From: Salpingoeca rosetta
Taxonomy: Eukaryota; Protista; Choanoflagellata
NCBI GenBank assembly: GCA_033442325.1
Contig: JAWQFM010000009.1
Span: 464,471-528,470 of the forward strand
Length of the DNA stretch: 64,000 nucleotides
Direction of reading: 5' to 3'
Positions within the stretch are counted from its first letter, which is position 1, and each line of letters starts with the position of its first letter. Below the pieces are notes generated by a model. That model had not been told where the DNA came from and searched no databases. It saw only the letters and a list, made by a program, of their open reading frames with translations. Below are positions 4,304 through 58,068 of this stretch, in pieces. The position numbers and the translations under genes were made by a program.

Positions 4304-4346
4304 AAAGGCAATTTTGCCTTTGTCCACAAAAGTAAAATTTGCCTTT
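4304..4346. promoter_or_regulatory. Two palindromic motif copies (AAAGGCAATTTTGCCTTT; AAAGTAAAATTTGCCTTT) in the PCMT1/SIRT1 divergent promoter
   Basis: Perfect 8-bp inverted repeat with 2-nt spacer at 4304-4321; degenerate copy at 4329-4346; recurs at three other divergent promoters. Confidence 0.55.
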
Positions 4347-4385
4347 GTGAGAACGACCAGCAGCGGAAGAAGACGAAGCGACACG

Positions 4386-7300
4386 ATGAGCCACAACAAC
4401 AACGTGCATGAGGATGGAACGATTGGAGCCAACGTCGAAGAGCAAGAGATGCAGCAGCAACAGCAACAGCAGGAGCAGCAAGATCGGGAACAGCAGCAGC
4501 AAGGAGGAATGGACAGTGATCCGGCTGAAAGTGCAGACGGGATTCCACCACCGAAACGGCCTCACATGCGTGAGTCAGTCAGTGGTGTCATCAGCAGTTG
4601 TTGTGTCATGCGTGGATGCCGGCTCTGCTTGGTTGTGCGTTGATTTGGACGTTCAGGTGGTGTGCTTCACTCTGTGCCAGGTTGTGCAGTTCGTTTAGTG
4701 CCACTCTGTGTGCTTCCCTCTGTACCAGACTGTGCCCTTCCCTCACTGTGCAATTCCTCCTGTGCCATCCTCACATGCACACTGCTGTTGCTGTTGCTGT
4801 TGCTGTTGGTGCTACTGTTGGTGCTGCTGTTGGTGGTGGGCAGAGGCTGAAGGAGCACAGGAAGCAGGCTTGAGCAGCGAATGCGAACAGGACCACGGGC
4901 CTGAGGGCAACACAGATGCCCTAGATGATGGCAATGGCCACGTTGTTGGGGACCAGAACGATGACGGCGAGGAACCGGACGAGGAGGAGGAACTGGGCGA
5001 CGAGGAGGAGGAGGAGGAGGAGGACACCAGGTTGCACCCAATTGACGTGGAACGTAAGCAGTCACTCATGCGTACAATTATTGCTGTTGTTGCAGTTGCA
5101 GCTGTTGAATGCCGCGGCTGTGGTGGCTGTTGAATGCTGCTGCTGACTGCAGCGCAGGCTCTCATGTTCACTTTGGTTTGAATGCAACGAAATTGTTCCC
5201 TACCAGTGATGAACAAGTGGTTCGTGCGCTATCGCCAGCGCGGCGGTACTGCAGACCGCATCATCGAGTACCTCAAGATGAGCTTCGCCTTTGAGGTTCC
5301 TCAAACAGAAGACGAGAAGTGGCAGCTCATCGCCCACGTTGCTGCTACCATCCTTGGTATTAATGTGTGTGGGTGTGTGGGTTTATGTGTGTTTGTGTGT
5401 GTGCATTTATGTGTGTACGATTGTATCCACGTTTGTGCGTGATTGTGTGTGTATGCGTGTGCGCGTGCGTTTGTGTATTTGCGTGTGTGTGCGTGATTGT
5501 GTGTATGCGTGTGCGCGTGCGTTTGTATCCCCGTGTGTATGTGTGTGTGTGTGTGTGTGTGTGCTGCCCTCACGTCGCAGTCGTGTATTCGTTGCTGTCC
5601 GCATGTCTTCATCATGGGCACAGGCAATCGCCTTCCGCGTCGCATCTCGTATCTGACGGTGGAGGAGCTGCTGAAGATGTCTGAGCGGATTGTCGTTATC
5701 GTCGGCGCTGGCGTAAGTGGCATTCAACCGCGCAAACAACCGCACGCGATGCACTCACCCGACCACAAATGCATGCACAGACAGGCAGACAGACAGCAGA
5801 CAGACAGACAGACAGACAGACAGCAGACACACACACACACACATAGACACACACACACATAGACACACACACACACACACACACACACACACACACACAC
5901 ACACACACACACACAGAGCTCACCAGGACCACCACTTCTACTGTGACGTGATGATATCAGGTGTCGACATCGAGCGGAATTCCGGACTTTCGGTCCGAGA
6001 AGACCGGCCTGTACGCCCGCCTGAAGAAGGAGTACCCAACACTCCCGCGCCCAGAGGTGCCCGTTGTGCATGATGCTGCTGTGTGTGTACGTGTGCTGGC
6101 ATGCTTGTGGAAAGTGTGTAGTTGTGATACCTTCTCTTCGCATGTCCTTGTCTCCTCCCTTGCCAGTTCACAACTACCTTCTCCTTCCAATCTCACCACC
6201 CACCACTTCGCCACGACCCCGCCTTGCGCACATGCAGTCGATGTTTGACATGGACTACTTCCTCTACGACCCGTATCCGTTCTTTGAGTTTGCACGGGAG
6301 CTGTTCCCAGGCAACTTCCAGCCCACCCCGAGCCACCACTTCATCCATAGGCTCGAGGCTGCCGGCAAGCTGCAGAGGTGCGCGGTAGTGATGGTGACGA
6401 GAGGGGCGCTGTGTTTGTAAGCGCGCGCGTGCGTGTGTGTATATGTGTGTATATGTGTGTATATGTGTGTATGTGTGTGTATGTGTGTGTGTATGTGTGT
6501 GTATGTGTGTGCGCGCGCGCGCGAATGAGTGCTTGGACAGGACGATGCTTGAATAACCGAACAGTCACACCTCCCCGATGGTTCGTCCGTTGTCCACCGC
6601 CGCCACCACCACCATCATCACCAGGTGCTATACGCAGAACATCGACACGCTGGAGACCGCTGTTGGCATCAAGCGCCTCCTGCAGTGCCACGGGTCGTTC
6701 GCCACAGCGTCGTGCATTGTCTGCGGCCATAAAGTCGACGGCGAACACATCCGCAGCGCCGTCTTTGCTGGGGTAAGGTGCCATGGTCATGTGATGGTGG
6801 TGGTGGCAATGTGACGATGTGGTGGTGGCAATGTGACGATGTGGTGGTGGTGGTGGTGGTGGTGAATACATGCGTGGGGTGCGTGTGTGTTTGACCTTTC
6901 GTTCACAGGCGTCACTGTTTGCACCTCACTGTCAACCCCCAACTCCATCTCCCCCACCACCGCTACATCTGCGCAGGAGATACCGCTGTGTCCCGTGTGC
7001 CCGCCGCCCAGCCGGCCCCTTCGCGAAATAGTGGACGAAACATCCAAATTCCTCAATCTGAAGCACAGACAGTACATGGTTACGTCAGGGAGCAGCAGCG
7101 GCGACGATGACAGCGAAGATGGCAGCGATGATGACGGTGATGTTGTCAGTGAAGAAGGGACAGGGAGCACACCAACAACAGGTGCCGGCGTGACTGCGAG
7201 TGGAGGTGGAGGTGGAGGTGGTGATGGGAGTGGCAGCACGGCAGTGATGCAAACGCAGGAGGGAGGCGGCAGTGTGGTGGATGCGGCGCCGGCCAACGCT

Positions 7301-57813: not shown

Positions 57814-58026
57814 GTGTGTGTGTGTGTGTGTGTGTGTGTGTGTGTGTGTGTGTGTGTGTGTGTGTGTGTGTGTGTGTCTGTGTGTGTGTGTGTGTGTGTG
57901 TGTGTGTCTGTGTGTGTGTGTGTGTCTGTGTGTGTGTCTGTGTGTGTGTGTGCACGGCGGTGCCCTCTTCTGTTGTTGTTGTTTGCCCTCTCTTGAAACT
58001 TTGGCGGCCGCCAACAACGGTTGAGC

Positions 58027-58068
58027 AAAGGCAAAATTGCCTTCATCCCCAACGTCAATTTTGCATTT
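58027..58068. promoter_or_regulatory. Palindromic motif AAAGGCAAAATTGCCTT plus degenerate ACGTCAATTTTGCATTT in the CENP-N/OCA2 divergent promoter
   Basis: Same consensus, again as a pair about 25 bp apart. Confidence 0.55.

Follow-up and report, generated by a model that had tools for sequence, protein, structure and literature searches.

What is the short palindrome that recurs between divergently transcribed genes of the choanoflagellate Salpingoeca rosetta, and is it read as DNA or as RNA? We addressed this question in a stretch of 64,000 nucleotides (hereafter the window; assembly GCA_033442325.1, contig JAWQFM010000009.1, positions 464,471 to 528,470 of the forward strand), in which the palindrome (c)AAAGKCAAWWTTGMCTTT(g) is present at all seven places where an earlier reading of the letters alone (hereafter the original prediction) had reported it (Table 1). 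The sites exist far above chance expectation, are confined to promoter gaps, and consist of halves that vary independently of each other. We think it probable, on balance, that the element is a binding site for a dimeric transcription factor, situated close to transcription starts and often paired; binding by a protein dimer, and the regulation of one or both flanking genes by that binding, are what we infer from these observations.

Enrichment and confinement to promoter gaps

Allowing up to two mismatches, the degenerate 16-mer AAGKCAAWWTTGMCTT matches the window seven times, against 0.13 matches expected from dinucleotide shuffles, and none of 100 shuffles reached seven. This 16-mer was derived from the sites that it counts, and a seed taken from a single site provides a less circular test: when only AAGGCAATTTTGCCTT is used and up to three mismatches are allowed, all seven loci are still found. 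They amount to 12 strand matches, where 0.46 would be expected, and all shuffles fell well short. A position weight matrix built from the sites scores them at 23.8 to 30.6, the next best score in the 64 kb being 8.3, and six of the eight occurrences of the 8-bp core CAAWWTTG in the window (W, A or T) fall within these sites. As a class, palindromes show no enrichment (56 in the window, versus 60 to 92 in shuffles), and the excess therefore concerns one specific word rather than a property of the sequence.

The seven sites form four independent clusters, all of which lie within four of the eight head-to-head gaps, an arrangement that the original prediction had proposed and that public gene calls bear out. 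The eight gaps total 4487 bp, or 7.0% of the window, and simple multiplication gives a chance of 0.07^4 (about 2e-5) that all four clusters would fall within them. Outside promoter gaps, in 93% of the window, no site was found, in agreement with the earlier remark that none had been noticed in exons or introns. Furthermore, a comparison of flanks among the four site regions detected no similarity beyond the motif, and the sites are therefore not duplications or copies of one segment; they arose independently.

Once the dyads are removed, isolated half-sites number 2 in the 4.5 kb of gaps and 15 in the 59.5 kb elsewhere, and are thus not enriched in gaps. Since it is the dyad that is enriched there, and not the isolated half-site, the dyad is the unit under selection. 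For the same reason, the two half-sites that had been singled out in the SLC25/IQ gap, and that we also find there, are probably not part of the element. Divergence did not survive as the distinguishing property of the promoters concerned: because 16 of the approximately 18 genes in the window are arranged as divergent pairs, the supported wording is "promoter gaps", and not divergent promoters over others. The further proposal that the element may drive bidirectional transcription finds no support here, nearly all promoters in the window being divergent and half of them being without the motif.

Anatomy of the sites

The consensus of the seven sites is (c)AAAGKCAAW·WTTGMCTTT(g), where the dot marks the centre, and forms a dyad of 16 to 20 bp. 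Its centre reads AAWWTT in all seven sites and is always symmetric. Among the 14 halves, GGCAA occurs seven times, GTCAA four times, and GTAAA, AGCAA and TGCAA once each, and half types mix freely within sites (GG/GG, GT/GG and GT/GT). The three doublets of the original prediction were recovered, yet their spacing, given there as 25 to 31 bp, proved to be 25, 30 and 24 bp from start to start. All three follow the same order on the plus strand, a near-perfect GG-type site preceding a weaker site with a GT-type left half, three doublets being too few for this shared polarity to reach significance. Gaps 1 and 4 have a common architecture, in which 41 and 36 bp, respectively, separate the end of the second site from the plus-strand ATG; taking all sites together, the ATG is between 36 and more than 1000 bp away.

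A candidate site for a dimeric transcription factor

We suggest that the element would act as a promoter-proximal, cis-regulatory site in double-stranded DNA, its 16-20 bp dyad being bound by a dimer of a symmetric, sequence-specific factor. Each subunit would read one AAAG(G/T)CAA half, and the narrow A/T centre (AAWWTT) would fix the spacing between half-sites. Paired sites 24 to 30 bp apart, near-perfect and then weaker, would probably bind two dimers cooperatively. The doublets share one polarity and are placed closest to plus-strand genes (sirtuin, myosin II and the CitMHS transporter). The original prediction had likewise taken the element for a symmetric site of the dimeric-factor kind, and the invariant palindromic centre, the independent halves, the lack of RNA covariation (see below) and the confinement to promoter gaps all agree with this. 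Dyad symmetry with independent halves, and an excess combined with promoter restriction, the latter in this window, are also what is generally expected of dimeric-factor sites.

RNA data covering 52250-58249 (three stranded raw-read runs and one contig run) bear on the position of the sites relative to transcription starts, raw-read depth in the gaps being at most about 1 and too sparse for placing starts. The F-box gene next to gap 3 has an RNA-derived contig whose first base is 52325, 14 nt past the site at 52296-52311; counted from that base, g3 occupies -29 to -14, and so sits at a promoter position. Our conclusion is limited to the sites being close to transcription starts, and their placement upstream of, overlapping or downstream of the start may differ by gene.

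Several observations weigh against a dimeric-factor site. Four of the eight head-to-head gaps are without the motif, the sample is small (one 64-kb window), and an additional 7.2 kb of S. rosetta sequence, with one more head-to-head gap, is free of sites, although it is too short to decide the matter. The flanking genes (sirtuin, PCMT, myosin II, CAP-Gly, DERA, F-box, CENP-N and the transporter) share no obvious common function, and the binding protein is only putative. In gap 4, an RNA-derived contig spans 57959-58105 unbroken, covering both sites, and is spliced to a downstream CitMHS exon. This contig leaves the genome at 58105, with GT following the ATG, such that the first CitMHS coding exon appears to end right after the ATG (ATG/GT; window 58103-58107). 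Some transcripts at least seem to include both gap-4 sites, and these may lie downstream of the transcription start, though the contig is not proof of this, given that its left end abuts a (GT)n tract and that an unstranded assembly can merge the overlapping 5' end of CENP-N. The position of the sites relative to the transcription start would then be inconsistent between gaps. Finally, no site was found in the promoter gaps of a 24-kb Monosiga brevicollis locus that carries the MscS orthologue, where we observed one moderate intragenic match. This locus comprises about four promoter regions; even at the frequency seen in S. rosetta, these would all lack a site in 6-13% of cases, and the result, from so small a sample, decides nothing.

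Further material was drawn from outside the window. At L006:23908-23927 (M. brevicollis CH991561.1), CAAGGTCAATATTGACATCG matches the dyad in part and has a canonical AGGTCA half; it lies inside the RasGAP gene and not in a promoter gap. As an out-of-sample attempt, an exact look-up of 20 candidate single-exon open reading frames matched the mitochondrial carrier only. Homologue searches yielded, apart from proteins encoded in the window itself, a single M. brevicollis protein, and the new S. rosetta sequence gained in all came to the 7.2 kb mentioned above. Contigs from relatives with homologues of PCMT or MscS (L003 and L127) were set aside: they are transcript-like (poly-T end, no introns), and therefore contain no promoters.

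Alternative explanations

The best placed of the alternatives, albeit an unlikely one in our view, is that the motif belongs to the core promoter and works as a TATA-like positioning site whose flanks are sequence-specific. It would stand at a short, constant distance upstream of the start and be recognised by basal machinery or by a general factor, and each copy of a doublet would serve one direction of a bidirectional promoter. The A/T-rich centre flanked by G/C would suit such a role, as would the position of g3 just ahead of the F-box contig, the similarity between gaps 1 and 4 in the placement of their second site, and the fact that half of the promoter gaps have the motif, a high share for a gene-specific factor. 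However, half of the promoters do without it, the distance to the ATG is far from fixed, and the half-sites, 10 bp long and strictly conserved, do not look like the loose consensus of a TATA box. Moreover, both gap-4 sites fall within the RNA-derived contig that is spliced into CitMHS, and sense-strand AGCAAG repeats (described below) are located upstream of the gap-1 sites; such a repeat, at 52433, is inside the F-box 5' untranslated region (UTR) seen in the RNA contig.

It is distinctly improbable that the element functions instead as RNA, in the form of a short 5' UTR hairpin controlling translation or stability. Five of the seven sites do fold as RNA hairpins (-3.6 to -8.5 kcal/mol) and better than most shuffles, the gap-4 sites are within an RNA-derived contig joined to CitMHS exons, and the doublets of gaps 1 and 4 stand just ahead of a start codon. 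Yet the folding energy is approximately nil for the sites at 52296 (-1.3 kcal/mol) and 58052 (0 kcal/mol), and covariation is no higher than in shuffles: over the seven aligned sites, a hairpin model leaves 81.6% of cells paired versus 79.7% with shuffled partners, a level equalled in 191 of 500 shuffles, and there is 1 compensatory change against 1.0 expected. Four sites carry T at position 4; its partner base can pair with it in one of them and is a non-pairing C in the other three. The centre, which would form the loop, is held to AAWWTT, a constraint needless for a loop, g3 lies upstream of the transcribed region seen, and no Rfam match was detected anywhere in the window. A structured RNA element is disfavoured, as pairing is not kept by compensatory change and not all copies fold. 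A double-stranded DNA site for a symmetric dimer is favoured over an RNA hairpin because covariation is absent, two sites do not fold, the would-be loop is symmetric, and the halves vary independently.

A metagenome scan for AAAGGCAAWWTTGCCTTT returned at least 120 matches, mostly single sites in AT-rich contigs (median GC 42%), with no 24-30 bp doublet among them. These matches are as expected from chance or from bacterial terminator-like hairpins, and have no bearing on choanoflagellates. Two metagenome contigs without open reading frames are tandem arrays containing the same 20-mer, CAAAGGCAAATTTGCCTTTG; the arrays (L094:660-1080 and L053:200-570, L053 being Ga0066832_10075192) are degenerate, and those in L094 are flanked by two other satellite-like arrays. 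They may resemble the S. rosetta motif by coincidence, and we treat them as unrelated. That the sites are functionless, whether as a chance or compositional artefact or as remnants of small repeats or transposon ends, is hardly credible: the motif was picked by eye in the same window used for counting, identical 18-mers exist by the thousand in unrelated metagenome contigs, and an unrelated array carries the same 20-mer, but the single-seed test still recovers all seven loci, the window outside promoter gaps is empty of sites, their flanks are dissimilar, and palindromes in general show no excess.

Genes and promoter gaps of the window

The window corresponds to GL832965.1 (GCA_000188695.1) on the same strand, where record position equals 209103 plus window position. 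An open reading frame for deoxyribose-phosphate aldolase in the window matched the S. rosetta DERA protein, and the window lies within the contig that encodes it. A codon-usage score for a gene map of our own showed no discrimination, and we therefore adopted the public gene calls of GCA_000188695.1, mapped onto the window (Table 1).

Table 1 Palindromic sites, head-to-head gaps and genes in the window (positions are window coordinates; gene positions are extents of coding sequences)
Feature	Position	Strand	Location	Details
g1A, AAGGCAATTTTGCCTT	4305-4320		gap 1	16-bp palindrome, perfect except WW centre; centre 73 bp upstream of sirtuin ATG (4386)
g1B, AAGTAAAATTTGCCTT	4330-4345		gap 1	25 bp after g1A; end 41 bp before sirtuin ATG
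g2A, AAGGCAAATTTGCTGT	34632-34647		gap 2	about 360 bp from CAP-Gly ATG (34280); about 1.1 kb upstream of myosin ATG (35749)
g2B, AAGTCAATTTTGACTT	34662-34677		gap 2	30 bp after g2A; both halves GTCAA type
g3, AAGTCAATTTTGCCTT	52296-52311		gap 3	single site, hybrid halves; 140 bp from DERA ATG (52156)
g4A, AAGGCAAAATTGCCTT	58028-58043		gap 4
g4B, ACGTCAATTTTGCATT	58052-58067		gap 4	24 bp after g4A; end 36 bp before CitMHS ATG
Half-sites	46374-46462		SLC25/IQ gap	TTGCCTT at 46374, TTGACTT at 46456
Gap 1	3755-4385		PCMT (-)/sirtuin (+)	doublet g1A and g1B
Gap 2	34281-35748		CAP-Gly (-)/myosin II (+)	doublet g2A and g2B
Gap 3	52157-52587		DERA (-)/F-box (+)	single site g3
Gap 4	57814-58101		CENP-N (-)/CitMHS (+)	288 bp; doublet g4A and g4B; first ~140 bp are (GT)n
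PDZD8-like	ends 2229	+
PCMT	2744-3754	-
Sirtuin-like, 808 aa	4386-8873	+		identity from sirtuin motifs in exons
Rad1	9199-11658	-
149-aa gene	12005-12587	+
MscS-like	13943-17911	-
BCCIP	18493-21873	+
RPL17	22123-23981	-
TM6SF2-like	24352-26295	+
867-aa coiled-coil gene	from 27280	-
CAP-Gly gene	ATG at 34280	-		start read in this analysis, backed by Pfam
Myosin II heavy chain	35749-44326	+
Mitochondrial carrier (SLC25)	45226-46161	-
IQ protein	46534-49190	+
DERA (deoxyribose-phosphate aldolase)	49792-52156	-		start codon at 52156 checked directly
F-box protein, 494 aa	52588-54370	+
CENP-N	55003-57813	-		start codon at 57813 checked directly
CitMHS-family transporter	from 58102	+		ATG at 58103

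Two kinds of repeat are found in the promoter gaps. AGCAAG(C)/CAAGCAAG repeats are approximately 24-fold enriched in head-to-head gaps and occur in six to seven of the eight, mostly in the sense orientation to the nearer gene (window 3851-4230, 11878-11970, 18238-18277, 46256-46349 and 52433); they are a candidate for a general feature of 5' UTRs or promoters in this genome. In addition, long (GT)n/(CA)n tracts fill large parts of several promoter gaps (window 57814-57952 and 17920-18040; L002:18770-18825 and 19050-19165), and the contig evidence indicates that they are probably also present in 5' UTRs.

As regards individual genes, the annotated start of PCMT (3754) places about 105 residues, including a hydrophobic stretch, before the canonical MAWRCS start (window 3439-3754, minus strand), an addition that may represent a targeting extension or a mis-called start. 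The 808-aa gene on the plus strand has clear sirtuin catalytic motifs in its exons, yet no Pfam family is listed for it in the gene table. The 5' UTR of the myosin gene is probably split by an intron.

Comparison with known systems

A literature search by topic and by motif string found no description of the palindrome, the string matching only primers and a bacterial lux box. The motif thus appears undescribed, as judged from 71 kb of one genome and this search: its kind, a cis-regulatory motif, is familiar, and the particular motif appears new in an organism with one known promoter motif. Choanoflagellates are the closest living relatives of animals, and a second common dyad motif, found in half of the promoter gaps analysed here, would offer a handle on its regulator. 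The site could be used as pull-down bait or for matching against DNA-binding data of S. rosetta factors, could aid the design of compact synthetic promoters for this species, and could show whether regulator and grammar are shared with animals. Its value lies in the genome-wide and biochemical follow-up that it opens up.

The RFX X-box is the only S. rosetta promoter motif described in the literature searched, and its consensus in S. rosetta and animals is GTTRCY, arranged as GTNRCC N0-3 RGYAAC (Coyle et al. 2023, PMC10530576). Like the X-box, our element is palindromic, is predicted to be read by a dimer, lies near transcription starts, and contains the pentamer TTGCC/GGCAA. Unlike in the X-box, however, the halves face the other way (everted, GGCAA-WW-TTGCC, rather than GTTGCC-N-GGCAAC), and the obligatory G1 is absent, this position being T or A such that the halves read (A/T)TTGCC or TTTGAC. 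The TTGAC/GTCAA variant also breaks the invariant C5, with A there in 4 of the 14 halves, and the genes flanking the sites are not ciliary. An X-box was consequently rejected on both its half-site consensus and the arrangement of its halves, and the original prediction was right to set the two apart.

For MADS-box and nuclear-receptor sites, the consensus sequences compared here are general knowledge. MADS factors, a family present in non-animal eukaryotes, bind CC(W)6GG (the CArG site of SRF) or CTA(W)4TAG / YTA(A/T)4TAR (MEF2). The element resembles these in being a 16-bp dyad with an A/T centre and, in six of seven sites, a C-(W)6-G core, but this core is flanked by (G/T)C...G(C/A) rather than CC...GG or CTA...TAG, and its centre is strictly AAWWTT. 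With outer bases of G/T and C/A that fail the consensus, a CArG/MEF2 site was also rejected. The housekeeping motifs of animal bidirectional promoters (such as TCTCGCGAGA, NRF1 GCGCATGCGC and the Drosophila DNA replication-related element TATCGATA) are likewise short palindromes near the starts of compact divergent gene pairs with unrelated functions; our element differs from them in its unrelated sequence, in being A/T-centred rather than CpG-centred, and in occurring as doublets.

Nuclear-receptor elements comprise RGKTCA half-sites, in inverted repeats with a spacing of 0, 1 or 3 or in direct repeats with a spacing of 0-5 (DR0-5), the estrogen response element being AGGTCA NNN TGACCT. The likeness to such elements noted in the original prediction holds for the inverted repeat with its GTCA...TGAC core, and for the AAAG 5' extension, which recalls extended half-sites such as AAAGGTCA. 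It does not hold for the half-site itself or for the spacing: none of the 14 halves contains RGKTCA (AGGTCA, AGTTCA, GGGTCA or GGTTCA), the halves being AAGTCA, AAGGCA or variants, and the 6-mers form an inverted repeat around a 4-bp spacer that is itself conserved (AWWT). A canonical nuclear-receptor element was therefore rejected on both counts, and, to our knowledge, canonical nuclear receptors are not known outside animals. We give very little credence to a related reading, in which the dyad would be the response element of a putative S. rosetta family of nuclear-receptor-like zinc fingers without a ligand domain, dimerizing on AAG(G/T)CA-N4-TG(C/A)CTT. Were it nonetheless true, a grammar resembling that of hormone response elements, with inverted GTCA/TGAC halves and a 5' A-rich extension, would predate animals.

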